A program made the position numbers and the translations under genes. From NCBI GenBank assembly GCA_002104905.1, contig MCFE01000412.1, positions 15,659 through 79,658 of the forward strand: 64,000 bases of DNA. Reading direction: 5' to 3'. This document shows positions 2,714 through 64,000 of the stretch, piece after piece. This DNA is from Basidiobolus meristosporus CBS 931.73. Its lineage: Eukaryota > Fungi > Basidiobolomycota. How positions within the stretch are numbered: position 1 is the first letter of the stretch; each line of letters starts with the position of its first letter. The notes under the pieces were generated by a model. That model ran no database searches. It saw only the letters and a program-made list of their open reading frames with translations, and was not told the origin of the DNA.

Positions 2714-3048
2714 TGTTGTAAGAGTCTTAGAGATATCAAAGTGATTGGTAGATTAAGTAGATTTTGCTGTTTCACTTGGTAATTTATTCAGCATAAAAGT
2801 AGTCTATTTACTTCTGCATGGTTTTGGCAAAGCAAATTTGTAGAATATATCTAGGAAGGTCTCAAGAGTATATGTGCAATGTTTGGAAATTCTTGAGAAT
2901 GTTTTTGTTCTGCATACATGATATTTTGGTGGAAATATTTTAATTAAATGCCAATAAGGAATTTGGCTAGAATTCTCCAAGATTTGTGTACATTGATTGA
3001 AGTGACCCAGTTAGGTGAATATTTAGGTGTAAATACAAATTTACAACA
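2714..3048 (-). mobile_element. Solo LTR of the same copia family, inverted
   Basis: Begins TGTTGTAAGAGTC (2714) and ends TTACAACA (3048). It aligns by eye along its whole length with the reverse complement of LTR 53575-53924. No adjacent PBS; TSD not recognisable. Confidence 0.75.
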
Positions 3049-19600: not shown

Positions 19601-21854
19601 TCAGTGGCTTTGGCGAGCTGTAGGCGATAATCGCCATCCGCCTCCCTACCAGTGACTACATCCTCTCCCATCTGAACAATCTTATTTGCCATTGTGATGA
19701 TAGAGCTCATGACAGCATCCTGCAGACTGGGGTGATGGCGAATCAGCTCGTCTATAGAAGTGCCGAGAACAGCAGGAACATCACCATCTTGTAGAGCGTC
19801 CAAATGCGGAAGAGAAGTGAAGATTTTGAAGAACTGTTCGATTTGATGGGATTCCTTGAAAGCTTCTAGGCCCGGCCCATTGAGACAGATGGCTCCAAAG
19901 GCATTGGGGATCGACGAAATAACATCGGCCGAGGTGGGGATATCCTTCTGAATGGTCTCCAAAAAGGTTTGCGGCAGCTTGGCCTCCTGAAGTATGGGCA
20001 AGGAGGTGGGCTCGTTGTGAATAAAGGTGGCCATGATGTTGACCACAAGGCCAAATATACTGCTTCCAAAGATCTTCGGGTGCTCAAGGACAGTTCTAAG
20101 AGAATGAGGGAAGGTGGAATCCACCAAGTTTCTCAAACCATCAGCGGTGCCAGAAGTCTGCATCATGTGTAAGATAAACTTGAGCATCGACTTCACAAAC
20201 GAGGTTCTTTCGTTTGGAATGAATGTCTTCTCTGGGGAAAGCTCGAACTCTTTGTTGATCTCCATGCAGTGGGCAACCTCGCCACGGATACGGTCGACCA
20301 GGATCTGAATTCCGTTGGCTTCGCAGAAAGTAGTGAAGGAGTTCGGGAAGCCATAGACAATTCCGTCAAGAAGACTGACTACACGGGTAACACTCTTGAT
20401 ATGCCGGGCTTCTCTGCTGTCAAGAATCGAGAGCAGAACAGGAATAATCCCAGCGGCAATCACCATATTGCCGCCGCTCTGTGTTGTGATGATGTAGCCG
20501 ATGAGTGAGAACAAAGCATCGATGAAGTCCTGGGGATAGTTTGTTTCTCCAGCTGCTACACTAGCTGCTACCTTTCGCAACAGATACATCAAGATACCAT
20601 GATTGGCCGAGGCATTAATCGCTGTCAAGATATCAGTCAACTTCGACCTGTAACGGCCAATCCCGTCGATGGCGTACAATGCAACGGTTTGAATGTCGAA
20701 GGGGACGTCGTTGTCCGGGTGAAGTAGTTCTGCCAAGTGGGAGCTACAATCGGGTTCGTATAGAAACAGCTTTGCTTGTGCAATCGGCTCGGTCACCACA
20801 TGCGCCATGATGGAGATAGCGAGGATTCGAATGATCAGGAGTTTCTTGCGTTCCTCGGGGTCATTCAACCCCCTTGCTAGCCGAATCCGATGGAAGAGTG
20901 AGAATGCTTTGTTCGATGGCACCTGGTATTGTTCAACCAGCTCATCCAACACTTCCTGGTCACTTTTGTGGTCGACAGTTGAATTCGGGATCGTGATGAC
21001 AACCAAACCTTCCGATATTTTGGATGCACTAGGCTCTCTCTGTCTATGGGATGGAGTAGGGGTTATTGGTGGCTCTGTGTTGTCGCTTTGTTTCAGAGTA
21101 CGATAGAACTGGTAGGATAACGAGGTCAAATCTTCAGGAATCTTGGTCTCACTCGAGCCCAATTGAAGAAACTCTAACCCATAGTCCTTGGTTCCCCAGC
21201 TCTGAGCCAGAGTCAATATTCGATCCTGTGTGACTGAGAAACTAGCTCTGAGAGAGCGCTGGCTGCTTAACCGCTGGGCAGGGCGAAGCATCAAACGCAG
21301 CGTCGTTTCTAGGATGACCAAATCATTCGTATGCAACAAATCGTTTAAATGCTGTAGTAGAAGCATGAGTGTGAGTGGTTAATAACAACATAGCAGCAAA
21401 GATCGACCTAGAGCAAACTTACCTCGTATGAATTGTAGATGTTTCTGTTCGTGCAGTTTTCTAAAAGGAGTCTTGAAAAGTGCAAGATTCCTTTTAGCAG
21501 GGTGAAAGTAAGCTGTGAAAAGCTTTTCTGTTGGATGTTTTTGAGCTCGTATTCTTTGCATATATCCTCAAGAATGCGATCAAATCTATCTAATACAATT
21601 ATCCAGTTGTACAAATCACCTCGAGAATAGGGCCATTCCTTTATGGAATCGAGCTTTGCAGCTAGATCAGAGTCAGTGATAGTGGATAACTCTTCAATCA
21701 ATTCCTTCATCTTAGGTGGCTGCAAGAAGAAAAGTTAATGAATGCACACGGAAAAGGCCCTCAAGAGCGCACAAGTTGGCCAAACGATCTACGCAAACAG
21801 ATGGATATTTACCATGGGTGCCAGTTTTTTTGGAGGGCTCTTTTTGATCTTCAT
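10675..21854 (-). CDS. TOM1: HECT E3 ubiquitin ligase Tom1/HUWE1, 3 exons (21854-21813, 21719-21423, 21351-10675)
   Basis: Start MKIKKSPPKKLAPM, UBA-like IQQLIDMGFPRGAAE, UBM-like IDPTFLEALPEDLRAEVL, and C-terminal HECT ending RLPSAHTCFNQLDLP...GFGFG. Confidence 0.97.
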
Positions 21855-38467: not shown

Positions 38468-38627
38468 CGATGCTCCTTTACTGTAGTTGCTGGCAGGCCT
38501 TGATTTCCAAGTGGCTTGGTTTTGTGACAGTGATGCAGTCTATAGAATCCAATAATCTGAATATCTCTGGGAGCTTGCCATTAGCCCCTGGATTCCCCTA
38601 TCTTCAATTTGTCGTTGGCCATGCACC

Positions 38628-38644
38628 AACCCTAACCCTAACCC
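38628..38644. promoter_or_regulatory. Telomere-type CCCTAA motif (about 2.8 units) in a divergent promoter; possible Tbf1/TRF-type site
   Basis: AACCCTAACCCTAACCC lies about 160 bp upstream of the DCTN4 start. Function inferred only. Confidence 0.35.
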
Positions 38645-38827
38645 CGAAGCGGGCTATTCTACGGGCGAGTTTAGCGATCTTCCGACGCAGTAAGAGATTA
38701 ATGCGATCGCTACCCTGTAACCCCATATCAAACAGCTGCATATCGAGACAAAAATGACCAATGTTGGCAATGCCGTGACATTGTATCGTAATGATGATAA
38801 AAGTACGGGAACGGAGCTCAAATCATT

Positions 38828-46515: not shown

Positions 46516-47520
46516 ATGGTCAAAGTCGCTATTCTTGGTGCTGCTGGTGGTATTGGCCAGCCGCTCTCCCTACTTCTCAAGCAAAACACTTTGGTCTCCC
46601 ATCTCGCTCTGTACGATATCGTCAGTGTATCAGGAATTGCCGCTGATCTTTCGCATATCAATACCGCATCAACCGTTACAGCCCATGTCGGCCCGGATTC
46701 CCTTCGAGATGCCGTTACTAACGCTCATATTGTGCTTATAGCAGCTGGGGTTCCAAGAAAACCTGGGATGTTTCGAAATGATCTATTCAAACTCAATGCT
46801 GGTATTATTGAGAATATGGCCACTGTTGCCGCCAAGTATTGCCCTAAGGCATACATGTTAATAGTGACCAACCCTGTTAACTCTACGGTTCCAATCGTAG
46901 CGAAAGTCTTCAAAAAAGCGGGGGTATACGATGCCAAACGCCTATTTGGTGTTTCCACCCTTGATTCTGTTCGTGCCTCGCGCTTTGTCACCGAAATCAT
47001 CCCCGAGTTGAATCCGATAAGCACTAGTATTCCGGTGATAGGCGGCCACTCTGGTAATACCATCGTACCACTTCTCTCGCAACTATCCTCGACTACAAAC
47101 CTCAGCAAGGAGCAAATTGAAGCATTAACTCATCATATACAATATGCTGGAGATGAGATTATAGTCGCCAAGGGTGGTATCACATCTGCCACGTTAAGTA
47201 TGGCCCACGCGGGTAGCCGCTTTGTGGGAAGTATTTTGGAGGCGACTGTGAACGGGACGCTAGGAATAATCGAACCTGCCTACGTTCATCTCGAAGCAGA
47301 TGCGCAGGGTGGAGATCAGATAAAGAAAGAAACCGATTGCGATTTCTTCGCTACTAATGTGGAGCTTGGTGTGGATGGAATCGCACGCGTTGTACCATTT
47401 GGTTCCATTTCTCCATATGAGAAGAATATCCTGGAGAATGCTATAGCAGAGCTAAAGGAGAACATCAAGTTAGGACTCAGTTATATTCGTGATTACGAGG
47501 TTGACCCGATAACCGCTTAA
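46516..47520 (+). CDS. MDH: Divergent malate dehydrogenase paralog
   Basis: [43 protein letters not shown]; substrate loop KGGITSATLSM. Confidence 0.92.
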   Translation: MVKVAILGAAGGIGQPLSLLLKQNTLVSHLALYDIVSVSGIAADLSHINTASTVTAHVGPDSLRDAVTNAHIVLIAAGVPRKPGMFRNDLFKLNAGIIENMATVAAKYCPKAYMLIVTNPVNSTVPIVAKVFKKAGVYDAKRLFGVSTLDSVRASRFVTEIIPELNPISTSIPVIGGHSGNTIVPLLSQLSSTTNLSKEQIEALTHHIQYAGDEIIVAKGGITSATLSMAHAGSRFVGSILEATVNGTLGIIEPAYVHLEADAQGGDQIKKETDCDFFATNVELGVDGIARVVPFGSISPYEKNILENAIAELKENIKLGLSYIRDYEVDPITA

Positions 47521-47926
47521 CATCTGCAAAGCTTAGTTGTTCATCTTTGTGCCTGCTTTTCCCAAAGAATAAAGATATTGGGATGGTTCATGCTACAAAC
47601 TACCCATATTGCGTGATTTTATAATACACGCAACTACGTGAATGAAGTTCAGCAGCCCATCTGGTAACTTCGTTGCATCTGCAAAGGATAACATATGATG
47701 GGGAGATAAGAATGACGGCAACGAGGATTAGTAGCAGCATGATCTCATTACACTCCAGGGAGGCAGTCCCCATACTCATATGCTACAATGAAGCCAAACA
47801 TCACACGAGGACGGAAATCGAGCTGGGTAAGAGTATCATGCTTAGGGTTAGGCCTTTGACATCACAAGTACCGCCACTTTCAAGATATTACACCTTTGTT
47901 GGGAGTAATAAAAAATAATTTGAAGA

Positions 47927-50181: not shown

Positions 50182-50812
50182 GTGGAGTGAATAACGCAAG
50201 GTTGGGATGACTAGATTTAAAAAATCTTCAACTACCACAATAGGTGCTAAGATATGTGGGCTTGCCGTTAATATTGATCACGTTTGGGAAGAACCCGGGA
50301 ATTCGGTGGGCCACATTTCCAAAAATGAGTTAGATCACATTCGAAAACTGAAAACGCTCAAGTTTATCTGGTATAAAGTAGCACTTTTCGCGGGTTGAAT
50401 TCATTAGTATGTAATCATAACCAACAGCAGTAGATTGGACTGGCTAGTATGAGAATATCTTTTAAGGATGGTGACCTGTAGAAATATATTGAGGATAATA
50501 ATTGTTTCTACCGCTCTTCTCAATTCTAACTCCTTTATTTGATTATTTGCTTCGCATTTTTACCTTATTGCGAGTGTATGTGATTTGTCTTTTTTCTGGG
50601 CTACTGAGTTGTCTTTGTACGCGTTGATGTCACTTAGCATCGAGTGACTCCTTACTTTGTAGCAAGATGTTATGATTTGAATCCTAACTAGTTACTACCG
50701 ATCACTTGAACACTACTGATCAAACACCTTGAAATTACAAGCTGACGATCAATCACACTCAATGATACACATATTATTTAATACATCTTGGTCCCTCCTT
50801 TTGGAAGCCTTA

Positions 50813-53574
50813 GGGGGAGACAGTCACCAACAGGTGAAATCTTTATTTCAGTTGAAACAAAGAAGCCAGCACTACTGTTGTAGCTTTGATACAAGAGTGT
50901 GTAGCTGAGGGGATTTGTAGGTAAGTTAATAAGAAGTGATGATAGTTCTTCAGTGCTCAAGACACTGTTCAGTGGGAGGGGGGGGTAGCAAGAGAGGTAA
51001 GAATGACTTGTGAACAACATTAATTGGGGGAATGTGATAAGGATTGATACTCATCACAAAGGGAGTGTGCTGCTGCAGATATTGCTGCCAAAGGTCTGTC
51101 AAGTACTTCAGGTAGGCCAGCTTGGATTTTTCTGACTGCAGAATAAATTGAGCAAACTTCTTGACTTCAGGATCTCCAAGTATAGTTCTCCAGCAGAAGC
51201 CAGGTGTAGTGTGGTGTGTTCTCTTCCATGCCTTAATCAGTGGGTTATTGCAGTGGTGAAGTCTGAGGTATAATCTGGTTCTAAGGTAGAGAAGTCTGAT
51301 CTTATAGGGCATAAACCCAAAAGCACCAAGAATAGCATGTCTGTAGGGGCATTCAGGCAAATGAGGCACCAAGGAGGTAATGCACCATACTGCAAACTTG
51401 TCAGGCTTAGTGCAGTCTGTAGAAGTAAGAGAGAGAAGTGGTAAGCCAAATTCCAGGGCAGGGAAGACAAACCGCTTGAGTAGAAGGAGGCAGCTGGAGG
51501 CTGAAGTTGTAGGAGGAGTAACAGCCAGTAGCTTGTGGAGTGCTGGTCTTGCCAGGATAATTCTCTTCTTCAGGTGTGCTCCAGAGTCTAGTCCAGCAGG
51601 AAGGAAAGGAAAGCCAAGGTATGTAGCAGAAACCCAAGCAGGTAGAGTGGAGTTCTCCAAGTTGATGGGAGAGCCCAAAGGTACTGTCTTTGCAATAGAA
51701 AGCTGGAGATTATTCTTCTGCAGATACTTGTGGATGGTCTGGGAGTCATGTTGCACATTGGAGGAGGATATTCTGATGTCATCAGCAAAGAGAGTAACCA
51801 GGCAGTCAGCCGAGAGTCTTAGGAAATCATTCAGGAAGATGGCAAACAGTATAGGACCAAGCACAGAGCCTTGAACCACTCCATTAGGAACTGAGAACAC
51901 AGCTGATTGCTCACTTGGGTGCAGAATTCTTGCTTGTGGATCCAGAAACAGAGACCTGACAAGGAGGGTGAGAGAGGTACTGGAGAAGCATTGCAACTTG
52001 GACCAAAGCAGATTTCTGTCAACTGAATCAAAGGCCTTGGTAATATCAAACAGAACAGAGGGATACTTGCACTGGAGAGAGTGATCTTGGCTAAGTATGA
52101 CTACATATTCCAAGGAGAGGCCAGGAACAAAGCCAAACTGTGCAAGATGAAACTTGAGGGAGTCAGAGTAGAGCTGCTGAGCAACCAGAAGCTCAAACAC
52201 CTTTCTGCAGGTGGGCAGCAGAGATATTGGCCTGTAGGAGTTAGGATCCAGGTGCTTTCCTTTACCCTTGTATAGTGGCAGAACATTGGCAAAGAACCAT
52301 TCCTCAGGAGTAGAAAGCTGGGCTGAGCATTGCTGAAACGGTGGAAGCAGAAGTGCAGACATGGCCTTGGTACTAGTCTTCAGAAGCTCATAGGAGATTG
52401 TGTCCACACCTAGGGCAGTAGAGTTTGGAAGCCTCTTGAGCACATTATTGATCCTCTCTTGATCAAGTGCAAGTGGGATGGGCAGACTCTTGAAGTCAGG
52501 ATGAAAGCTAGGACTTGAGTACTGCTTTGTAGAGAAGAAGATGTTAGCCAGCTGTTCTGTTGAAGGCAACTTCCTGAAAGAGGGCCTCATTGCCCGGTAG
52601 AGTCTTGACACTGTTCTTGCTATAGAGTTGGAAGATTGCAGAGGCAAAGAACTCATAATATGGTCCCAGAGCTGAGTATGCAGAGTGTGGTGAATTGCCT
52701 TGGAGTGGTGTATGGCTGTCAGGAGGAGCTTCTCTGTTTTTGGGTTAGGGAAGCTTGGGTAGCTTTGTTGCAGGGCTGAAACAATGGATTCCCATTTTCT
52801 TGAGGTAACAGCTGTAGTCTTGCATGGCAGTGAGAGAGAGGCAGAGACCAGAATCAGATGCTTCACAAAGAGACAGGCATAGCTGAGATCATCAGGCAGA
52901 GAAAGTAGCAAACTGGCAAGCTTCAAGTAGTTTCCAAAGTCTTTCTTCTGATTCTTGGTAGCTTTGTGGGTGAGCACAGTAAGTTTTGGCAGCTTCTTCT
53001 TCACAACTGGTTGCATAGAAAGGGACCAGGCTGGGTGGTCAGAGACTCTCAAGGATCCTAGCTCAGCTGCAGAGAATTGCTTGACTTCATTCACAAAGTA
53101 GAGGGCAGCAGCAGAAGGGCAGATCCAGTCAACACAACTTTTCTCAGTTTGAGCACCTAGTGCTAGCAGATGGCTTTCTCTCAGGAAGTTCAGTAGGAAT
53201 ATAGAACTTGGCTTCATTCTTGCAGTCAGAGTAGTCTTGTTCTCAGGATGGGGAATGTTGAGATCTCCAAGCAAGATAACAGGTGCTAATATAGATTGCT
53301 GGTATTGCTGAACATTCCGGCATACAACTTGCACTTTGTGAAGGAGGAGACTTGGAGGCAGATAGCAGAGCACCAGACTGACAGTTGGCAACTGGAGAGC
53401 AACACAGTAAGGGGGGTAAAGAGGAGCACAGAGCTGAGGAGTATTGATGGTAGAAGAGATGAAGCTGATAGAGGAGGTATTCTTTGTTCTAGGAGTGGAA
53501 AAGCAATATAGATTAGTCAAAAGTTTAGAGGGTAGCTGGACATTAATCAAACACAGGAGGGAAAATCCTGAAAG
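50813..53574 (-). mobile_element. Telomere-associated non-LTR retrotransposon, copy A (ORF2 almost complete, 5' part lost)
   Basis: ORF 50950-53574 carries APE motifs (CYLP, GDLN, VDWI, SDH) and RT motifs (YRPISLL, QFGF, DITKAFDSV, GVVQGSVLGP, LFADDI). 3' junction is TTAGGG-GG-AGACAGTCACC. The track's MELQIFTT start is LTR-derived. Confidence 0.93.
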
Positions 53575-54612
53575 TGTTGTAAAAATTTGTAATTCCACCT
53601 AAATATTCACCTAACTTAGTCACTTAGATCATTACCCTCAAATCCTAGAGAATACTGACCAAAATTCCTTGTCGGGATTTACTTAGAATATTATCACCAA
53701 AATACCAGGTACCCAGAACATGAAAATTCTCAAAGTTGTCCAAACAGCCCCAGACTTTGCACACATGTTCTTGGGACCTTCCTTAACCTATTCTACATGA
53801 TTGTTATGCCAAGACCATGTAAAAGTATAAATACTACTTTTACATTCAATATATCATTAAGTGAAAACCACATAATCTACTTGTTCTCCAAATCACTTCC
53901 AATATCTTCAAGACTCTTACAACAGGCTATGTGCCCCAAGCTGTCACTCTCTGCAATATCCACTACTGCTATTACTGGAATTTTTCCCTCTGCTGAAATG
54001 TTGGATGGATCTAGCTACCAAGTGTGGAAGGTGAAAATGAAGATGCTGCTACAAGAAAGAGGCCTTTGGGATATTTTCATGGGAGAAGAATGCTCTCCTA
54101 AAAACTTGGGAGAGGGAGCCTTGAAGTACCAGAAGAAAGAAAAAAGTGCCTTTAACTGCGTTTGCCTTAATGTTAAAGACAAATTGCTAATTCAATGCTC
54201 ATGAGCAGAAATGGCAAAGAATGCCTGGAAGGCATTAGAAGACACCTACCAGTCATGTTCAGCTGCTAAGAAAATGTATCTGAGACAAAAACTCTTTACT
54301 ACAAAGATGCTGCCAGGAGAAGAAATGAAAAATCTAATTAACAGAAATACCCTGCTGGTAGATGAGATGGAATCTGTGGGTGTACCAACTACTGATGAGG
54401 ATGTGATAGTTACCATCCTGAAGAGCCTGACAGACAAGTTTCAGGGCCTTGTATCAACCCTAGAGTCCAGAACTGAAGACTTGACCTTCAATTACGTATA
54501 TGGAAGGCTTCTGGATAAAGAATTAAGAAAAACAAGCGCCAATAAGAAGGAAGAAGAAAATGCTTTAATAAGCAACAATGACCAACAAAGGAGGTACCCA
54601 AGACCCTACAAG
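53575..54612 (+). mobile_element. Ty1/copia element (complete 350-bp 5' LTR 53575-53924, PBS, partial gag) inserted into LINE copy A and truncated
   Basis: LTR runs TGTTGTAA...TTACAACA; PBS GGCTATGTGCCCC; gag LDGSSYQVWKVKMKMLLQERGLWD with in-frame TGA at 54202-54204; homology to the copy at 1-1262 ends at about 54612. Confidence 0.88.
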
Positions 54613-54616
54613 GGTA

Positions 54617-57600
54617 GGGGGAGAGAGTCACCAACAGGTGAAATCTTTATTTCAGTTGAAACAAAGAAGCCAGCGCTACTGTTGTAGCTTTGATACAAGA
54701 GTGTGTAGCTGAGGGGAATTTGTAGGTAAGTTAATAAGAAGTGATGATAGTTCTTCAGTGCTCAAGACACTGTTCAGTGGGAAGGGGGGTAGCAAGAGAG
54801 GTAAGAATGACTTGTGAACAACATTCATGAGGGGAATGTGATAAGGATTGATATTCATCATAAAGGGAGTGTGCTGCTGCAGATATTGCTGCCAAAGGTC
54901 TGTCAAGTACTTCAGGTAGGCCAGCTTGGGTTTTTCTGACTGCAGAATATAGTGAGCAAACTTCTTGACTTCAGGATCTCCAAGTATAGTTCTCCAGCAG
55001 GAGCCAGGTGTTGTGTGGTGTGTTCTCTTCCAGGCCTTAATCAGTGGGTTGTTGCAGTTGTGAAGTCTGAGGTATAATCTGGCTCTAAGGTAGAGAAGTC
55101 TGATCTTATAGGGCATAAACCCAAAAGCACCAAGAATAGCATGTCTGTAGGGGCATTCAGGCAAATGAGGCACCAAGGAGGTAATGCACCATACTGCAAA
55201 CTTGTCAAGCTTAGTGCAGTCTCTAGAAGTAAGAGAGAGAAGTGGTAAGCCAAATTCCAGGACAGGGAAGACAAACTGCTTGAGTAGAAGGAGGCAGCTG
55301 GGAGCTGAAGTTGTAGGAGGAGTAACAGCCAGTAGCTTGTGGAGTGCCTGTCTTGCCAGGATAATTCTCTTCTTCAGGTGTGCTCCAGAGTCTAGTCCAG
55401 TAGGAAGGAAAGGAAAGCCAAGATATGTAGCAGAAACCTGAGCAGGTAGTGTGGAGTTCTCCAAGTTGATGGGAGAGCCCAAAGGTACTGTCTTTGCAAT
55501 GGAAAGCTGGAGATTATTCTTCTGCAGATACTGGTGGATGGTCTGGGAGTCATGTTGCACATTGGAGGAGGATATTCTGATGTCATTGTTGTATCCAAGA
55601 GAAAGTGTAATAAAACTCTTGAATGGTTTAACTGAACCAAAGGGACAATTAAGTGCAGAATCTTAGAATTGTCAGAGAGTGGCGGAAATATTAGCAGAAA
55701 GATTCTGATCTAATATTGGTCTTGGATATAGCTGGATTGGCTATAAATGATATTTGTTTGCTAGGCAGGCTAGGCTTGGTGTTCTTTGGAGTGCTAGATA
55801 TACTAGGCTGGGATAGAACCTATAACGGAATTGTTGGATTCTTTATTTTTGCTGAGACAGAATCTTAATTTCGTTGAGACACACACTAAACCAAAGGTTC
55901 AGTAAACTTTATTTATACTTTTCTGATCAAGTTGAATTAGTAAGCGCCAAGGGACTGGATTGATTGAAATCAAATTGGGTGTTCATAGGTGCATAAGATA
56001 AATGAAAATTACATCATCAATCAACTGATGTCTTGGCAACTGCACCGTGGTTGGATAGATCTCAGATGACTAATCACCTGGGAAGGCTTGGCAGATATGT
56101 TGATAACGTAATGACCATTTGAAAATAGATCAGGTGTGATAGCTAAAAGTAGATTCTGAGGTGGGATAAAATAAACTGTAACTGGGATTTGTTATGTTTG
56201 GGTTAGGGTAAATCAGTTAGGGTACTAGATTTTCAAACGGAGTAAAATTGGCTAAGTTTTAAATGTTGATGCACAACAGTCATCAGCAAAGAGAGTAACC
56301 AGGCAGTCAGCTGAGAGTCTTGGGAAATCATTCAGGAAGATGGCAAACAGTATAGGACCAAGCACAGAGCCTTGAACCACTCCATTAGGAACTGAGAACA
56401 CAGCTGATTGCTCACTTGGGTGCAGAATTCTTGCTTGTGGATCCAGAAACAGAGACCTGACAAGGAGGGTGAGAGAGGTACTGGAGAAGCATTGCAACTT
56501 GGACCAAAGCAGATTTCTGTCAACTGAATCAAAGGCCTTAGTAATATCAAACAGAACAGAGGGATACTTGCACTGGAGAGAGTGATCTTGGCTAAGTATG
56601 ACTGCATATTCCAAGGAGAGGCCAGGAACAAAGCCAAACTGTGCAGGATGAAACTTGAGAGAGTCAGAGTAGAGCTCCTGAGCAAGCAGAAGCTCAAACA
56701 CCTTTCTGCAGGTGGGCAGCAGAGATATTGGCCTGTAGGAGCTAGGATCCAGGTGCTTTCCTTTACCCTTGTACAGTGGCAGAACATTTGCAAAGGACCA
56801 TTCCTCAGGAGTAGAAAGCTGGGCTGAGCATTGCTGAAACAGTGGAAGCAGAAGTGCAGACATGGCCTTGGTACTAGTCTTCAGAAGCTCATAGGAGATT
56901 GTATCCACACCTGGAGCAGTAGAGTTGGGAAGCCTCTTGAGCACATTATGGATTCTCCTTTGATCAAGTGCAAGTGGGATGGGCAGAGTCTTGAAGTCAG
57001 GATGAAAGCCAGGAGTTGAGTACTGCTTTGTAGAGAAGAAGATGTTAGCCAGCTGTTCTGTTGAAGGTAACTTCCTGGAAGAGGGCCTCATTGCCCTGTA
57101 GAGTCTTGATACTGTTCTTGTTATAGAGTTGGAAGATTGCAGAGGCAAGGAACTCATAATATGATCCCAGAGCTGAGTATGCAGAGTGTGGTGAATTGCC
57201 TTGGAGTGGTGTATTGCTGTCAGGAGGAGTTTCTCTGTTTTTGGGTTAGGGAAGCTCAGGTAGCTTTGTTGCAGGGCTGAAACAATGGATTCCCATTTTC
57301 TTGAGGTAACAACAGTAGTCTTGCATGGCAGTTAGAGGGAGGCAGACACCAGAATCAGATGCTTCACAAAGAGCCAGGCAAAGTTGAGATCATCTGGCAG
57401 AGTAAGTAGCAAACTGGCAAGCTTCAAGTAGTTCCCAAAGTCTTTCTTCTGATTCTTGGTAGCTTTGTGGGTGAGCACAGTAAGTTTTGGCAGCTTCTTC
57501 TTCACAACTGGTTGCATAGAAAGGGACCAGGCTGGGTGGTCAGAGGCTCTCAAGGATCCTAGCTCAGCTCCAGAGAATTGCTTAACTTCATTCACAATGT

Positions 57601-58024
57601 AGAGGGCAGCAGCAGAAGGGCAGATCCAGTCAACACATCTTTTCTCAGATTGAGCACCTAGTGCTAGCAGGTGGCTTTCTCTCAGGAAGTTCAGTAGGAA
57701 TGTAGACCTTGGCTTCATTCTTGCAGTCAGAGTAGTCTTGTTCTCAGGATGGGGAATGTTGAGATCTCCAAGCAAGATAATAGGTGTTAATATAGATTGT
57801 TGGTATTGCTGAACCTTCTGGCATATAACTTGCACTTCCTGAAGGGCTAGACTTGGAGGCAGATAGCAGAGCACCAGACTGATAGTTGGCAACTGGAGAG
57901 CAGCACAGTAAGGGGAGTAAAGAGGAACACAGAGCTGAGGAGTATTGATGGTAGAAGAGATGAAGCAGATAGAGGAGGTATTCTTTGTTCTAGGAGTAGA
58001 AAAGCAATATAGATTAGTCAAAAG
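54617..58024 (-). mobile_element. Telomere-associated LINE, copy B (5'-truncated, nonsense codon, interrupted by a solo LTR)
   Basis: Same ORF2 sequence as copy A; TCA>TAA at 57332-57334; 5' break at ...AGATTAGTCAAAAG followed by GGTTAGGG. Confidence 0.92.
55587..56278. mobile_element. Solo LTR of a second family, 692 bp, with a 5-bp TSD
   Basis: Termini TGTTGT...ACAACA; GTCAT is duplicated at 55582-55586 and 56279-56283; the LINE sequence resumes seamlessly on both sides. Confidence 0.9.
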
Positions 58025-58032
58025 GGTTAGGG
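58024..58032 (+). repeat. Interstitial telomeric repeat GGGTTAGGG at a LINE junction
   Basis: Lies exactly at the 5' truncation point of copy B; absent at the equivalent position in copies A and C. Confidence 0.8.
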
Positions 58033-58107
58033 GAGGGAAAGTCACCAAGGTAGGTGAAATCTTTATTTGATTGCAGACAAGTCTAACTACAAATAAAGAA
58101 GCCAGCT
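58033..58107 (-). mobile_element. 75-bp 3'-end stub of a divergent LINE subfamily
   Basis: GAGGGAAAGTCACCAAGGTAGGTGAAATCTTTATTT...AAAGAAGCCAGC aligns with the canonical 3' end but carries indels. Confidence 0.75.
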
Positions 58108-58167
58108 GGGGGGAGACAGTCACCAACAGGTGAAATCTTTATTTCAGTTGAAACAAAGAAGCCAGCG

Positions 58168-60937
58168 CTACTGTTGTAGCTTTGATACAAGAGTGTGTAG
58201 CTGAGGGGAATTAGTAGGTAAGTTAATAAGAAGTGATGATAGTTCTTCAGTGCTCAAGACACTGTTCAGTGGGAAGGGGGGTAGCAAGAGAGGTAAGAAT
58301 GACTTGTGAACAACATTAATGAGGGGAATGTGATAAGGATTGATATTCATCATAAAGGGAGTGTGCTGCTGCAGATATTGCTGCCAAAGGTCTGTCAAGT
58401 ACTTCAGGTAGGCCAGCTTGGGTCTTTCTGACTGCAGAATAAATTCAGCAAACATCTTGACTTCAGGATCTCCAAGTATAGTTCTCCAGCAGGAGCCAGG
58501 TGTTGTGTGGTGTGTTCTCTTCCAGGCCTTAATCAGTGGGTTGTTGCAGTTGTGAAGTCTGAGGTATAATCTGGTTCTTAGGTAGAGAAGTCTGATCTTA
58601 TAGGGCATAAACCCAAAAGCACCAAGAATAGCATGTCTGTAGGGGCATTCAGGCAAATGAGGCACCAAGGAGGTAATGCACCATACTGCAAACTTGTCAA
58701 GCTTAGTGCAGTCTCTAGAAGTAAGAGAGAGAAGTGGTAAGCCAAATTCCAGGACAGGAAAGACAAACTGCTTGAGTAGAAGGAGGCAGCTGGGAGCTGA
58801 AGTTGTAGGAGGAGTAACAGCCAGTAGCTTGTGGAGTGCCTGTCTTGCCAGGATAATTCTCTTCTTCAGGTGTGCTCCAGAGTCTAGTCCAGTAGGAAGG
58901 AAAGGAAAGCCAAGATATGTAGCAGAAACCTGAGCAGGTAGAGTGGAGTTCTCCAAGTTGATGGGAGTGCCCAAAGGTACTGTCTTTGCAATGGAAAGCT
59001 GGAGATTATTCTTCTGCAGATACTGGTGGATGGTCTGGGAGTCTTGTTGCACATTGGAGGATGATATTCTGATGTCATCAGCAAAGAGAGTAACCAGGCA
59101 GTCAGCTGAGAGTCTTGGGAAATCATTCAGGAAGATGGCAAACAGTAAAGGACCAAGCACAGAGCCTTGAACCACTCCATTAGGAACTGAGAACACAGCT
59201 GATTGCTCACTTGGGTGCAGAATTCTTGCTTGTGGATCCAGAAACAGAGATCTGACAAGGAGGGTGAGAGAGGTACTGGAGAAGCATTGCAACTTGGACC
59301 AAAGCAGATTTCTGTCAACTGAATCAAAGGCCTTAGTAATATCAAACAGAACAGAGGGATACTTGCTCTGGAGAGAGTGATCTTGGCTAAGTATGACTGC
59401 ATATTCCAAGGAGAGGCCAGGAACAAAGCCAAACTGCGCAGGATGAAACATTGAGGGAGTCAGAGTAGAGCTCCTGAGCAAGCAGAAGCTCAAACACCTT
59501 TCTGCAGGTGGGCAGCAGAGATATTGGTCCTGTAGGAGCTAGGATCCAGGTGCTTTCCTTTACCCTTGTACAGTGGCAGAACATTTGCAAAGGACCATTC
59601 CTCAGGAGTAGAAAGCTGGGCTGAGCATTGCTGAAACAGTGGAAGCAGAAGTGCAGACATGGCCTTGGTACTAGTCTTCAGAAGCTCATAGGAGATTGTG
59701 TCCACACCTGGAGCAGTAGAGTTGGGAAGCCTCTTGAGCACATTATGGATTCTCCTTTGATCAAGTGCAAGTGGGATGGGCAGAGTCTTGAAGTCAGGAT
59801 GAAAGCCAGGAGTTGAGTACTGCTTTGTAGAGAAGAAGATGTTAGCCAGCTGTTCTGTTGAAGGTAACTTCCTGGAAGAGGGCCTCATTGCCCTGTAGAG
59901 TCTTGATACTGTTCTTGTTATAGAGTTGGAAGATTGCAAGGCAAGGAACTCATAATATGATCCCAGAGCTGAGTATGCAGAGTGTGGTGAATTGCCTTGG
60001 AGTGGTGTATTGCTGTCAGGAGGAGTTTCTCTGTTTTTGGGTTAGGGAAACTCAGGTAGCTTTGTTGCAGGGCTGAAACAATGGATTCCCATTTTCTTGA
60101 GGTAACAGCAGTAGTCTTGCATGGCAGTGAGAGGGAGGCAGACACCAGAATCAGATGCTTCACAAAGAGCCAGGCATAGTTGAGATCATCTGGCAGAGAA
60201 AGTAGCAAACTGGCAAGCTTCAAGTAGTTCCCAAAGTCTTTCTTCTGATTCTTGGTAGCTTTGTGGGTGAGCACAGTAAGTTTTGGCAGCTTCTTCTTCA
60301 CAACTGGTTGCATAGAAAGGGACCAGGCTGGGTGGTCAGAGGCTCTCAAGGATCCTAGCTCAGCTCCAGAGAATTGCTTAACTTCATTCACAAAGTAGAG
60401 GGCAGCAGCAGAAGGGCAGATCCAGTCAACACATCTTTTCTCAGATTGAGCACCTAGTGCTAGCAGATGGCTTTCTCTCAGGAAGTTCAGTAGGAATGTA
60501 GACCTTGGCTTCATTCTTGCAGTCAGAGTAGTCTTGTTCTCAGGATGGGGAATGTTGAGATCTCCAAGCAAGATAATAGGTGTTGATATAGATTGCTGGT
60601 ATTGCTGAACTTTCTGGCATATAACTTGCACTTCCTGAAGGGCAAGACTTGGAGGCAGATAGCAGAGCACCAGACTGATAGTTGGCAACTGGAGAGCAGC
60701 ACAGTAAGGGGAGTAAAGAGGAACACAGAGCTGAGGAGTATTGATGGTAGAAGAGATGAAGCAGATAGAGGAGGTATTCTTTGTTCTAGGAGTAGAAAAG
60801 CAATATAGATTAGTCAAAAGTATAGAGGGTAGCTGGACATCAATCAAACACAGGAGGGAAAATCTTGAAAGAAGTCTCTCTAGAGTTGGTCTTGATGGCT
60901 GTATGCTGTTGCAGTTAAGCAACAGAACTTCAGGTAG
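58168..60937 (-). CDS. LINE ORF2: APE-like endonuclease plus reverse transcriptase (frameshifted in this copy)
   Basis: Stitched from ORFs 59918-60922, 59490-59939, 59387-59590 and 58168-59493; begins LPEVLLLNCNSI with no ATG; ends VSKLQQ*. Confidence 0.88.
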
Positions 60938-62447
60938 TCAGGCAGAGGTTGTAGCTTCTTCAGAGGCAGCATTGACAATGTGACCTGCAGAGTCCCAGAG
61001 CTCTTCAAATGGTGCATCACTTAAGTCAGCAAGGAGGGAAATGGCATGATTCTTGAGGAAGTATGCCACATCATAGGAGGGGGCTTGTCTCTTGATGGCA
61101 GCAAAGAAAGACAGAATGGCAACATGGGCTGGAGGCTTGTTGAACAGTAGAGAGTCAGAGGATTCAGATTCTTCAGGCACTATCTTGAAGTCAGTTTTCA
61201 GCCAGTTAAGGTTCTTCTGCCACAAAGGCAACAAATGGGTCAGCAATGTTTTGGTCTAGGATAACCTCCAGAATCTTCCCTTTTCTCCAGGCCAGGTTGA
61301 CAATTCTTGAGAGCTGAATATTGCATGCCTTGAGTGCTTTCCTGATGTTGGAAATGGGAGTCCAGGGAACTTGCTTCAAGTACACCACAGTCCAGGTAGA
61401 AGCTGGTGGTAGGTTTGCTGGGGGCTTGTAAGTCCTTCTGTGTGGCAATGGAGCTGCAGTAGTCAGATTGGAGTCCACATTCTCAGTAGAGGGTTTTCTT
61501 GATGTGTCTTGCTGAATGGTACTGGAGCTGGATGTGCTGATAATTCTTGCTAGAACCTTGCCTGCATAAGTCTGAGGTATAGCTGAGGTGACTGTAGAGG
61601 TGGTGGCAGCTGGTGCAGGTGGAGAGGCAGAAACTGAAGCAGGAACTGAGGTCACCTGGGAGAAGGCAGTAGAAGCAGGTTTTCTGGGAGGAACAGAGTT
61701 CACTATCCAGTTGTTCTGTAAAACACTGGAGTAGCTTTTCTGTGGAACAGGATCTTGCTCTTGAACAGGAACAGAAGCAGGAGGCTGGGGCTGAGCAGTA
61801 GTGGTAAGGCAGTGGCACTCCAAGGAAGCTTTTTGCAAGGCATCTCTGGCAGTTTTCAGGGCAGTATTGGCTTCATTCTTGAGCTTCTTGCATTGGGCAT
61901 CCAGTCTCTTGTTTTCAATAGCCAGGGCAGTATTGGCAGCCTCTAAATCAGCAATTCTCTTCTCAATTGCAAGGAATCTCTGAAGAAATGCATCAGTAGA
62001 AGTGCTGGCATCTGGGAGAGCAGTGGCAGGAATAGAGTCCATTGACAGTGGGCTTCTTGGAGGCAAGGAAAGTGGACTGGCAGATTCAGGCACAAAAGGA
62101 GATATCCTGGCAGGAGGAGAAGGAGTATCCAAGGCAGTAACAGAGGCAATTCTTGTTGGTGAAGCAGCAGCAGGGGAGGCAAGCCTGTTCAGAAACTGGG
62201 CAGGAGAGAGTGCTTGAGGAGAGGGAGTCTTCAGCTTGCCAAGCATGTCTTCCATCAGAGTGATACCAATATTCCTGGTGCATTTGCAGAGAAAAGTAAG
62301 CTTCCTGAGTCTGCCAGCTCTTCCATTCCTTCTGATAGTTCCTTTGTTTCCACAGTTGGGGCAAGAAATCTTCTTGACAGACTTGTCAAAGCAATCAAGA
62401 ACCTTCCTTTCAGGTGTAGTGGGCTCCTGTTGAGGTTTTGGTGGCAT
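60938..62447 (-). CDS. LINE ORF1 (zinc-finger-like N-terminus, coiled coil, Pro/Ser linker, RRM-like region); one frameshift near 61250
   Basis: ATG at 62447 (MPPKPQQEP); CPNC...CKC; FLAIEKRIADLEAANTALAIENKRL; WTVVYLKQVPW..IRKALK; continues in ORF 60938-61246 to TGA. Confidence 0.8.
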
Positions 62448-62516
62448 ATCCAGAGTTTCAGCTTCAAATTTCAATTTTTGAGATTTTTGGGTGATTTTTG
62501 ATGGGCGGGATCAAAA

Positions 62517-62530
62517 TTAGGGTTAGGGTT
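62517..62530 (+). repeat. Internal telomeric repeat TTAGGGTTAGGGTT
   Basis: Lies 70 bp upstream of the ORF1 ATG. Confidence 0.9.
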
Positions 62531-62572
62531 GCGCGCTGTGACTGCTTTTTACGATCGCAAGGTCAGAACCTA

Positions 62573-62870
62573 GGAAAAAATAAAAATAGTTAGTAAAGGT
62601 GATTTAATGGATGGATGGATGGATTCGGAGTCAGATTCAATCAAAAAATCAAATCGTTGACTAATTTAAAGAGGAAAAAATAAAAATAGTTAGTAAAGGT
62701 GATTTAATGGATGGATGGATGGATTCGGAGTCAGATTCAATCAAAAAATCAAATCGTTGACTAATTTAAAGAGGAAAAATAAAAATAGTTAGTAAAGGTG
62801 ATTTAATGGATGGATGGATGGATTCGGAGTCAGATTCAATCAAAAATCAAATCGTTGACTAATTTAAAGA
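62573..62870. repeat. Tandem repeat, 3 x about 100 bp, containing (ATGG)4
   Basis: Units at 62573, 62673 and 62773 are nearly identical apart from A-run lengths. Confidence 0.95.
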
Positions 62871-62885
62871 GGGTTAGGGTTAGGG
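62871..62885 (+). repeat. Interstitial telomeric repeat GGGTTAGGGTTAGGG
   Basis: Lies between the 100-bp array and the 3' end of LINE copy D. Confidence 0.9.
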
Positions 62886-63790
62886 GGGAGACAGTCACCA
62901 ACAGGTGAAATCTTTATTTCAGTTGAAACAAAGAAGCCAGCGCTACTGTTGTAGCTTTGATACAAGAGTGTGTAGCTGAGGGGAATTTGTAGGTAAGTTA
63001 ATAAGAAGTGATGATAGTTCTTCAGTGCTCAAGACACTGTTCAGTGGGAAGGGGGGTAGCAAGAGAGGTAAGAATGACTTGTGAACAACATTAATGAGGG
63101 GAATGTGATAAGGATTGATATTCATCATAAAGGGAGTGTGCTGCTGCAGATATTGCTGCCAAAGGTCTGTCAAGTACTTCAGGTAGGCCAGCTTGGGTTT
63201 TTCTGACTGCAGAATATAGTGAGCAAACTTCTTGACTTCAGGATCTCCAAGTATAGTTCTCCAGCAGGAGCCAGGTGTTGTGTGGTGTGTTCTCTTCCAG
63301 GCCTTAATCAGTGGGTTGTTGCAGTGGTGAAGTCTGAGATATAATCTGGTTCTAAGGTAGAGAAGTCTGATCTTATAGGGCATAAACCCAAAAGCACCAA
63401 GAATAGCATGTCTGTAGGGGCATTCAGGCAAATGAGGCACCAAGGAGGTAATGCACCATACTGCAAACTTGTCAAGCTTAGTGCAGTCTCTAGAAGTAAG
63501 AGAGAGAAGTGGTAAGCCAAATTCCAGTACAGGGAAGACAAACTGCTTGAGTAGAAGAAGGCAGCTGGGAGCTGAAGTTGTAGGAGGAGTAACAGCCAGT
63601 AGCTTGTGGAGTGCCTGTCTTGCCAGGATAATTCTCTTCTTCAGGTGTGCTCCAGAGTCTAGTCCAGTAGGAAGGAAAGGAAAGCCAAGATATGTAGCAG
63701 AAACCTGAGCAGGTAGAGTGGAGTTCTCTAAGGTGATGGGAGAGCCCAAAGGTACTGTCTTTGCAATGGAAAGCTGGAGATTATTCTTCT
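62886..63790 (-). mobile_element. Telomere-associated LINE, copy D (3'-most 0.9 kb)
   Basis: Canonical 3' end; ORF 62943-63749; cut at ...ATTCTTCT, where other copies continue GCAGATAC. Confidence 0.93.
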
Positions 63791-64000
63791 TTAGGGTTAG
63801 GGTTAGGGTTAGGGTTAGGGTTAGGGTTAGGGTTAGGGTTAGGGTTAGGGTTAGGGTTAGGGTTAGGGTTAGGGTTAGGGTTAGGGTTAGGGTTAGGGTT
63901 AGGGTTAGGGTTAGGGTTAGGGTTAGGGTTAGGGTTAGGGTTAGGGTTAGGGTTAGGGTTAGGGTTAGGGTTAGGGTTAGGGTTAGGGTTAGGGTTAGGG
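63791..64000 (+). repeat. Telomere, (TTAGGG)35 to the end of the window
   Basis: 210 bp of perfect TTAGGG with the G-rich strand running toward the end. Confidence 0.99.

Follow-up and report, generated by a model that had tools for sequence, protein, structure and literature searches.

The terminal 13 kb of the window, by which we mean the whole 64,000-nt stretch analysed, consists of a one-way stack of four copies (A to D, from centromere to tip) of a LINE designated F1, all of them minus-strand, each 3' end facing the centromere (Table 1). This arrangement, with its intact centromere-ward 3' ends, had been proposed in the original prediction and is borne out by comparison with one intact F1 reference copy, against which the identities of A to D were measured: all four 3' ends are complete, B and D are 5'-truncated as foreseen, and the array closes on the anticipated 35 TTAGGG repeats, all of them perfect. 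Copy A, the oldest of the array, is interrupted at 53574/53575 by a copia-type LTR and gag fragment (PF14223), also as predicted, and its 5' part is gone, as is the remainder of the copia element from the array. Copy B as a whole (54617-58024) is 98.5-98.7% identical to the reference. In keeping with the expected absence of the family from internal sequence, comparison with the F1 element gave no match in positions 1-50812 of the window. Copy C had been called full length, and it is (99.7%), but it is not coding-intact, the ORFs being frameshifted. Two earlier assignments have to be corrected. The "stub" that had been counted as a separate copy is the threefold 100-bp repeat of copy C's own 5' UTR, and the (TTAGGG)2 at 62517, one of four cited junctions, is internal to the same UTR; both adjoin every full-length copy at other ends and therefore belong to the 5' UTR of copy C.

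Table 1. Features of the terminal array (positions in the 64,000-nt window).
Feature	Position	Strand	Remarks
Single TTAGGG	50810..50815	+	Joins unique subtelomeric DNA to copy A
F1 copy A	50813..53574	-	3' 2.76 kb of element; 95.9% to intact reference; 882-codon open frame
Copia-type 5' LTR (starts TGTTG) and start of gag	53575..54610	+	Truncated within gag; PF14223
Variant telomere unit (G)TAGGG	54611..54616	+	Between the truncated gag of copia and copy B
F1 copy B, 3' part	54617..55586	-	Reference positions 12-981
Solo LTR, TGTTG...CAACA, 692 bp	55587..56278		Inside copy B; 5-bp target duplication GTCAT
F1 copy B, continuation	56279..58024	-	Reference positions 977-2722; 5'-truncated
Junction GGTTAGGG	58025..58032	+	Between copy B and F3 fragment
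F3 (ORF1-only family) 78-bp 3' fragment, two-hairpin module	58030..58107	-	Ends ...CTGGG; between B and C
F1 copy C	58108..62872	-	Full length; 99.7%; ORFs frameshifted, not coding-intact
Copy C 3' module: SL1, SL2, C-rich tail	58108..58170	-	
Copy C ORF2 region, APE and RT	58171..60936	-	Interrupted in C; 922 codons in intact copies
Copy C ORF1 region	60940..62508	-	CxxC..CxC motif, coiled coil, RRM-like C-terminal domain
(TTAGGG)2	62517..62528	+	Inside element 5' UTR; in every full-length copy
Three 100-bp 5' UTR monomers of copy C	62572..62872	-	End at constant 5' terminus ...TTTAAAGAGG
Junction GTTAGGGTTAGGG	62873..62885	+	Between copies C and D
F1 copy D	62883..63790	-	3' 0.9 kb; 5'-truncated; 98.3%
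Terminal telomere, 35 perfect TTAGGG units	63791..64000	+	Contig end

F1 has no LTRs, is frequently truncated at the 5' end while its 3' ends are complete, and carries two ORFs separated by one in-frame UGA. Its reverse transcriptase (RT) is of the non-LTR type (RVT_1, E 1.4e-25, 90.6 bits), with human L1 ORF2p as closest PDB sequence match (E 1.7e-13) and arthropod and Mucorales LINE RTs as nearest non-family matches (27-36% identity). The endonuclease is N-terminal in ORF2. Its Pfam matches are sub-threshold (PF14529, 21.7 bits against a cut-off of 27.4), its N, Y, GDLN, VDW and SDH motifs line up with those of LINE endonucleases, and the APE fold is confirmed at the level of a predicted model (pLDDT 82), which matches the TRAS1, APE1 and L1 endonucleases at E 1e-9 to 2e-11; among PDB structures 1WDU, the TRAS1 endonuclease, ranks first (E 2.3e-11), by a small margin over APE1. 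The residues N, Y, GDxN, D and SDH are kept in four lineages, in all of which the metal-binding active-site Glu is Asp, and the pN of 0.30 versus a pS of 0.75 shows conservation under purifying selection. With its RT, N-terminal APE domain and truncation pattern, F1 is an APE-type non-LTR retrotransposon (LINE), as originally classified. Across more than 20 contigs, full-length copies share 98.4-100% identity, and in nine of them both frames are open. All have one constant 5' terminus, which falls on a monomer boundary, the monomers themselves numbering three in copy C and 0-8 in other F1 copies.

At its 3' end the element bears two hairpins, SL1 (a 10-bp stem holding AAUAAA) and SL2 (UCACC/GGUGA), followed by a C-rich tail (...CUCCCC) that includes roughly one unit of the telomeric C strand, CCCUAA(CC). 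Poly(A) is absent at all 78 element 3' ends found in the window and 29 other loci, the tail reading ...CTCCCC plus 0-2 units; this tail is also the presumed 3' end of the RNA. The module is kept across at least seven families, folds well (z -2.9 to -4.7) and has a covarying closing pair. F1 is one member of a consortium in which this 3' architecture, two hairpins plus a C-rich tail with one telomere unit at its end, is shared, and which comprises at least three autonomous lineages, two families (F3 and F6) encoding only an ORF1-like protein, and one 523-bp SINE-like element with the LINE 3' module and without an ORF. No tRNA was detected in this SINE-like passenger by ARAGORN or Rfam (E≤0.1), box A/B-like strings being visible by eye only. 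Relatives from other samples, 63% identical, show the identical tail and CCCTAA junction arrangement. In stringent-type LINE/SINE pairs, such as eel UnaL2/UnaSINE1, the RT recognises a conserved 3' stem-loop and a short repeat tail common to the SINE; unlike F1, stringent-type LINEs are scattered through the genome, and the repeat in their tail differs from the telomere unit.

Genome-wide, 1,356 F1 3' ends were found (1,241 forward and 115 reverse; control, 0). Among the matches listed, forward 3' ends lie at the highest contig coordinates and reverse ones below 14 kb. The confinement to contig ends with fixed polarity that had been expected thus holds for the listed copies, and is read from these matches and from 30 loci. 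The 78 element 3' ends of the window and the 29 other loci all have the same polarity, none being reversed. Of the 29 loci, 15 reach the contig end through 9-38 TTAGGG units, tracts in the interior have at most four units, and three loci have a non-LINE block in common on the distal side of the LINEs. TERT, whose presence had been proposed as a check, is encoded in the genome (RBD matches above cut-off and a T motif), and the 35 terminal repeats look telomerase-made. This is the part that stands of a proposed alternation between LINE and telomerase; for the junction tracts of 1-2 units, an origin within the retrotransposed unit is an equally good explanation.

The 78 junctions contain one TTAGGG in 50 cases, two in 14 and four in one, with partial or variant units only in the other 13. 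The most frequent arrangement has GGTTAGGG between a sequence of any kind ending in G and the element; short fillers also occur. Traces of terminal loss accompany these junctions: the copia gag is broken at different points in the window and at another locus (L002), a LINE caps each break, and the remainder of copia is missing from the distal array beyond the gag truncation, while the unique DNA at 50810 is capped via one telomere unit. Along the array, from centromere to tip, identities run 95.9, 98.6, 99.7 and 98.3%, and at ten loci proximal neighbours show 92.8-99.0% versus about 98.4-99.3% for central copies, the proximal copies being older than the distal ones; the gradient is imperfect because copy D is more diverged than C. 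Two internal telomere-like sites of 2-2.5 units (38627-38645 and 47842-47852) hold no insertion.

The consortium to which F1 belongs consists of telomere-specific non-LTR retrotransposons, and its host is a telomerase-positive fungus of zygomycete grade. We consider it probable (roughly 0.6) that reverse transcription is primed by the chromosome's G-strand 3' end where termini are short or eroded, with telomerase capping afterwards. In the presumed order of events, the RT would recognise the hairpin module of the element RNA, which could account for the mobilisation of the ORF1-only and SINE-like passengers that share it, and the RNA tail would pair with a G-ending 3' OH on the G-rich strand of the chromosome. 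cDNA synthesis would extend the chromosome, leaving the element 3' end facing the centromere and its 5' end as the new terminus. Additions would be made mostly onto very short or eroded ends, telomerase would re-cap the new end, aided by G-rich 5' termini and the TTAGGGTTAGGG seed built into the 5' UTR, and the head-to-tail stack would be the outcome of repeated loss and addition. L1 reportedly can prime from uncapped ends of dysfunctional telomeres, independently of its endonuclease, in repair-defective cultured cells and not as a natural lifestyle. Retention of the APE endonuclease counts against end priming, since a purely end-primed element should not need one. If the end-building reading holds, a telomerase-using fungus also builds its chromosome ends with retrotransposons, as fruit flies do.

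The same endonuclease lies at the centre of a rather unlikely alternative of the TRAS/SART type, in which it would nick double-stranded telomeric repeats on their G strand, whether at the terminus or interstitially, for ordinary target-primed insertion; to account for tract length, longer interior tracts would, with no greater probability, be unstable and break, or elements would intercalate into short tracts. Its conservation under purifying selection and its predicted fold, nearest to 1WDU, favour such a role, and the TRAS1 endonuclease cuts the TTAGGG strand, yielding equal polarity (PMC2868851). The single polarity that the original prediction traced to priming by the G-strand 3' end is real, but because such a nick gives the same result, polarity alone is no proof of a natural-end primer. 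MoTeR arrays have like short, stable tracts that are attributed to breakage (PMC7367193), and the interior tracts seen here could be survivors of breakage instead. Against insertion into repeats stand the truncated copia and the unique DNA, capped with at most one unit and with the distal rest of the target gone, the 13 of 78 junctions without a perfect unit, and the two internal sites left unused; the Glu-to-Asp change in all four lineages and the slight lead of 1WDU over APE1 as structural match weaken the case drawn from the enzyme.

Arrays built mainly by recombination among subtelomeres (break-induced replication, unequal exchange or D-loop copying), with the LINEs passive, are quite improbable. 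Recombination is documented for MoTeR arrays (PMC7367193), and it would suit the identical SINE-like tandems at one locus (L007) and the recurrence of the same copia/LTR pieces and a shared distal block at several ends; it fits poorly with many different 5' truncation points, each then followed by a complete 3' end, with a family order that varies between ends, with the near-identity of full-length copies across contigs and the nine open ones among them, and with a constant 5' terminus at the monomer boundary. The chance of a collapsed or chimeric repeat set at the contig end is very slight. The source assembly is repeat-rich (1,366 contigs) and array orientation is oddly biased (1,241:115), but short-read unitigs derived from further runs on this sample join at least 14 distinct truncation points to a telomere unit and a 3' end, and 30 loci, as well as contigs of unrelated samples, have like architecture. 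The array is not an assembly artefact, a concern raised at the outset, as independent short unitigs reproduce many joints of truncated copy, telomere unit and 3' end.

Most closely comparable are the MoTeR/FoTeR elements of fungi, with a different endonuclease. MoTeR1/MoTeR2 (Magnaporthe oryzae), FoTeR (Fusarium oxysporum) and Cnl1 (Cryptococcus) likewise reside in fungal hosts with telomerase and, like F1, always have the 5' end tip-ward, 1-2-unit interstitial TTAGGG tracts between elements, at least a partial repeat at the 3' end of each relic, telomere-like repeats at the 5' end, a non-autonomous partner with a common 3' end, and LTR elements inserted into the arrays (PMC7367193, PMC12857005). 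In Magnaporthe, interstitial tracts of at least three units break (PMC7367193). These are CRE-clade elements with one ORF and a C-terminal restriction-like endonuclease, whereas F1 has an N-terminal APE domain and a separate ORF1. The CRE-clade motif (CCHC ... RHD ... E ... RAD ... E, C-terminal to RT; PMC12857005) was not found in the F1 ORF2 C-terminus; this and the N-terminal APE domain rule out F1 as a MoTeR/FoTeR/CRE-clade element. The Basidiobolus system also differs in its several autonomous lineages, ORF1-only elements and SINE-like element, and in its zygomycete-grade rather than ascomycete or basidiomycete host. A literature search found no paper describing a telomere-confined APE-class LINE system in an early-diverging fungus.

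TRAS1 and SART1 (Bombyx, Tribolium; R1 clade) are, like F1, APE-type telomeric-repeat LINEs whose host keeps telomerase (PMC2868851, PMC10088271), and TRAS1 shares its polarity and supplies the best fold match. They have poly(A) ends, and their insertion point is one fixed nucleotide within long repeat tracts; neither applies to F1, with its telomere-unit tail, 1-2-unit tracts and direct capping of truncated non-telomeric DNA. HeT-A/TART/TAHRE of Drosophila (PMC5537684 and general background) resemble the present system in head-to-tail arrays with 3' ends toward the centromere, in a division of labour between RT-encoding and Gag-only elements (here the ORF1-only F3 and F6), and in the healing of broken ends; Drosophila has lost telomerase and its elements have poly(A), whereas Basidiobolus has TERT and a TTAGGG cap. 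A HeT-A/TART-type telomere, lacking telomerase and short repeats, is ruled out by TERT and the 9-38-unit terminal arrays. Athena/Coprina, Zepp (Chlorella), GilM/GilT (Giardia) and Tx1-1_ACar are likewise telomere-associated retroelements, Athena having short telomeric repeats able to pair with the G overhang (PMC10088271 and general background). They belong to other RT classes than F1 (PLE; CRE; L1-like); Athena/Coprina, unlike F1, are without any endonuclease, and Zepp stacks on poly(A) tails. F1 is ruled out as a Penelope-like Athena/Coprina element by its APE domain and by LINEs being the nearest relatives of its RT.

A tentative extension of end priming, to which we give somewhat less than even odds, is that the consortium forms a working second telomere-maintenance layer, in which uncapped G-ending 3' ends are extended without endonuclease cutting. 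Within it, and no less tentatively, the RNA tails of the LINE, ORF1-only and SINE-like elements would mimic the telomerase template; it is similarly conceivable that every added element supplies a telomere seed for re-capping by telomerase. If true, this layer would stand, as a living intermediate, between telomeres of the telomerase kind and the retrotransposon telomeres of the Drosophila type, and it may relate to a genome with unusually many chromosome ends.

Three features of the array had been missed in the original prediction: the copy B junction at 54611, the 78-bp F3 fragment at 58030, and the solo LTR in copy B, a repeat that recurs at five other loci.

Within the 89.5-Mb assembly (1,366 contigs), where the window spans the final 64 kb, at the right-hand end, of contig C716, copies of the APE- and RT-encoding LINE family that forms the terminal array (F1) were mapped using as reference an intact F1 copy on another contig (L002:1491-6066). 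In agreement with the original prediction, the mapping yields four copies of one LINE on the minus strand (A to D, from the centromere side to the tip), with B and D 5'-truncated and C full length, no F1 match in positions 1-50812 and 35 perfect TTAGGG units at the end. The predicted loss of the 5' part of copy A was placed at 53574/53575, where a copia-type 5' LTR and the beginning of gag (PF14223) interrupt the element. This copia is itself truncated near 54605-54610 and joined to copy B via a variant unit, (G)TAGGG; copy B carries a solo LTR of 692 bp and its 5-bp duplication, and the B-C interval consists of GGTTAGGG plus a 78-bp 3' fragment from another family. What had been read as a fifth copy (62572-62872) and as a junction at 62517 had to be reassigned to the 5' UTR of copy C, since all other full-length copies present the same arrangement after ORF1: (TTAGGG)2, a spacer, zero to eight 100-bp monomers and a constant end, ...TTTAAAGAGG. 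Copy C shows private frameshifts and indels. The G/C skew of the window takes a sharp positive turn exactly across the array. LTR-retrotransposon debris, comprising copia-type LTR/gag pieces and the solo LTR, turns up repeatedly, both in LINE arrays at several chromosome ends and at the window's left edge.

Features of the array, its flanks and related loci (window coordinates unless a locus is named)
Feature	Coordinates	Strand	Remarks
F1 copy A	50813-53574	minus	95.9% to reference; 5' part lost
F1 copy B	54617-55586 + 56279-58024	minus	98.5-98.7% to reference; interrupted, 5'-truncated
F1 copy C	58108-62872	minus	99.7% to reference; full length
F1 copy D	62883-63790	minus	98.3% to reference; 5'-truncated
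Terminal telomere	63791-64000		35 perfect TTAGGG units, window end
LTR-retrotransposon debris	55587-56278; 53575-54610; 6-820; 2714-3048		First is the solo LTR, TSD GTCAT
5'-end telomeric string, F1	62517-62528
5'-end telomeric strings, SINE-like head and F3 5' region	L007 ~6660-6690 and 920-955
In-frame UGA	L002:4330-4332; window ~60937-60939	minus (L002)	Equivalent site in L033, L034, L035
EN Asp site	~60830-60850 (copy C)		ORF2 residues ~30-36 (CLIDVQ)
Internal telomere-like site	38627-38645	minus	2.5 units, no element
Internal telomere-like site	47842-47852	plus	TTAGGGTTAGG, no element
Shared distal block	L013:6061-7405; L020:6624-7351; L030:4917-6044		At least 1.3 kb
HECT/DUF908/DUF913 (HUWE1/Tom1-type) E3 ligase	10675-21366	minus	3,563 codons uninterrupted; 30 kb from telomere
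MDH	46516-47520

The array is not an assembly artefact, its joints being reproduced in unitigs of other runs of the same sample. In these unitigs F1 is truncated at no fewer than 14 distinct points, each followed by a telomere unit and a 3' end. Summed unitig depth across 57900-63790 drops about 4-7 fold from the F1 3' part to the 5' UTR, as would be expected if 5'-truncated copies are in large excess, though contig depth is a poor measure.

The distribution of F1 was assessed genome-wide with a 26-nt motif from its 3' end, which matched 1,241 times in forward and 115 times in reverse orientation, against 0 matches for a reversed-pattern control. Among the 100 places listed, forward matches occupy the highest coordinates seen per contig, no reverse match is farther than 14 kb from coordinate 1, and one contig (C291) carries both; the end location and fixed polarity anticipated for a genome-wide map therefore hold among the listed matches. 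The imbalance between the two counts, an odd bias given that assembly orientation is arbitrary, places most arrays at right-hand contig ends, and the number of F1 ends suggests either that chromosome tips are very numerous or that many contigs consist of array alone. Every one of the 45 scored matches to copy C has the same orientation. Of the 29 other loci, 15 reach a TTAGGG array of 9-38 units at the contig end, and none of the 78 element 3' ends in the window and these 29 loci has the opposite orientation. Distal to the LINEs, three loci share a block in one orientation and at 98.6-98.9% identity; it begins with degenerate telomere-like repeats (..GGGTGTAGGTGTTATAGTAAGGGCTAG..) and contains tandem repeats of ~155 bp.

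At the 3' junctions, one perfect TTAGGG is found in 50 of the 78 cases, two in 14 and four in one, the other 13 presenting partial or variant units alone (CTAGGG, GTAGGG, TGAGGG, ...GCTGGG); poly(A) is absent from all 78. Truncated F1 copies most often continue into GGTTAGGG and then the next element, with G as the upstream end in five of five such cases. Terminal TTAGGG arrays mostly begin after G-ending element ends. Some junctions contain fillers of 1 to ~50 nt. The upstream partner may be an element (full-length or truncated at an arbitrary point), copia gag or unique DNA, and proximal copies tend to be older than distal ones. Two telomere-like sites without an element occur internally in the window.

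Intact F1 copies encode an ORF1 of 523 codons, a single in-frame UGA followed by CUA, and an ORF2 of 922 codons. The ...SA-UGA-CU(A/C)... layout is kept in F1 and three diverged relatives (CUC in one of them), which points to programmed stop-codon readthrough as the likely source of an ORF1-ORF2 fusion. Both frames are open in nine of the ~20 full-length copies retrieved, and copies are 98.4-100% identical, indicating a young family. ORF1 has a CxxC...CxC motif and a coiled coil, and its conserved C-terminal domain was modeled (pLDDT 76) as an RRM-like beta-alpha-beta-beta-alpha-beta fold plus helices; in a fold search nothing in the PDB matched this domain at E<=0.001, nor did L1 ORF1p. ORF2 matches RVT_1 (Pfam, E 1e-25), and neither RNase H nor a C-terminal restriction-like endonuclease was found in it. 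Its N-terminal endonuclease (EN) scores below the Pfam threshold and, searched alone by sequence, has zero PDB matches even at E 10; the motifs N, Y, GDLN, VDW and SDH nevertheless align with LINE endonucleases, and a fold search with the EN model (pLDDT 82) succeeded, retrieving the TRAS1 EN as best match (1WDU, E 2.3e-11), then APE1, ExoIII and L1 EN. The metal-binding Glu is replaced by Asp in all four lineages (F1 and the three relatives), the other catalytic motifs being retained. With pN at 0.30 and pS at 0.75, the latter saturated, sequence comparison indicates that the EN is under purifying selection, as is the remaining ORF2. Searches with the RT (Pfam, PDB, ESM Atlas, word-based, exhaustive HMMER, cluster names) recovered unnamed LINE RTs only; exhaustive HMMER placed about five clusters close by before scores fell to generic LINE RTs, and the next-best matches with named hosts come from Artemia, Tribolium, Cordylochernes and Parasitella.

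F1 is accompanied by further families, inventoried from the flanks of 30 loci. The autonomous lineages F4 and F5 are, respectively, 47-51% identical to F1 in ORF2 and 44-49% identical to every other lineage. F3 (~1.0 kb) and F6 have an ORF1-like sequence adjoining the 3' UTR as their sole ORF, and a non-coding SINE-like unit of 521-525 bp contributes 26 3' ends among the loci; neither ARAGORN nor Rfam supported a tRNA-derived head for it. Common to all these families is a 3' module of two hairpins and a C-rich tail, with folding z-scores of -2.9 to -4.7. Stem 1 (10 bp) contains AAUAAA and has a covarying closing pair (AU 5, GC 3, CG 1, UG 1), hairpin 2 is a 5-bp UCACC/GGUGA stem, and the terminal tail is predicted to be single-stranded. 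Telomeric C-strand strings (CCCTAACCCTAA, CCCTAACCC and CCTAACCC, RNA sense) lie near the 5' ends of three families.

In the reading that we favor, with a probability of roughly 0.6, the G-strand 3' end at a short or eroded terminus primes reverse transcription and telomerase then caps the product. The 3' OH of a very short or eroded terminus would pair with the C-rich tail, which bears about one telomeric unit, and the paired chromosome end would act as primer; the element's new 5' end would become the new terminus, to be re-capped by telomerase. Putative capping seeds are TTAGGGTTAGGG in the F1 5' UTR and, for F3 and the SINE-like element, strings of the CCTAACCC type close to their 5' ends. 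TERT, whose presence was to be checked, is indeed there (Telomerase_RBD above cut-off; T motif FYITE...FYFRQDFW). The copia gag truncation points differ between the window and L002, and the copia remainder is absent distally, as predicted by terminal loss followed by capping and not by simple insertion. TRAS-like nicking by the element's own EN seems to us the less probable alternative; in its favor, the F1 EN is conserved and the TTAGGG strand is the strand cut by the TRAS1 EN (PMC2868851). In Magnaporthe, interstitial tracts of at least three units break (PMC7367193). The short tracts seen here may hence be survivors, and not a signature of the insertion step.

Telomere-specific retrotransposons have several origins, including the R1 clade in insects, Jockey in flies and CRE in ascomycetes and Giardia. 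The F1 system would be a further independent case, and one joining features without precedent in combination: an APE-type lineage, an early-diverging fungus, a telomere-repeat tail in place of poly(A), and a full division of labour among RT-encoding, Gag-only and SINE-like elements. A 2023 survey of telomeric retroelements comprises TRAS/SART, GilM/GilT, Zepp, MoTeR1, Tx1-1_ACar, Athena and HeT-A/TART/TAHRE (PMC10088271), and the fungal MoTeR, FoTeR and Cnl1 all belong to the CRE clade, with a restriction-like endonuclease (PMC12857005). MoTeR arrays are closest to the F1 system in their way of working, but F1 lacks the restriction-like endonuclease of that clade; unlike TRAS/SART, its 3' ends have no poly(A) tail. 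In line with the suspicion that an APE-class case in an early-diverging fungus was unfamiliar, searches of the open full-text literature turned up no fungal APE-type telomeric LINE, no Gag-only partner and no SINE specific to telomeres. With more than 1,300 copies, many of them intact, the system is a natural setting in which to test whether reverse transcription is primed by the chromosome ends themselves, what purpose a conserved endonuclease would then serve, and how end maintenance is shared between telomerase and retroelements. These questions touch on a long-standing idea, the evolutionary and functional interchangeability of telomerase and retrotransposons.

The system is not confined to one assembly. 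In a second sample with the same species label, neither of two runs contains F1 itself; what they share with it is limited to the conserved 3' module and its telomere junction, the module adjoining telomere repeats in contigs. Five unrelated Logan samples contain a 63%-identical LINE ending in ...UUCACCUGUUGGUGAUUGUCACCCCC, followed by TAACCCTAA, after which one Logan contig continues into a further element. The genes of the window are ordinary eukaryotic ones, encoding a HECT E3 ligase, MPP-beta, SWI3, MDH and a GH46 enzyme; the best named relatives of MPP-beta are from Mortierella, Umbelopsis, Glomeromycota and Zoopagomycota (62-69% identity), which marks the host as a zygomycete-grade fungus. 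Housekeeping genes come as close as 3.3 kb to the array, MDH being the nearest.
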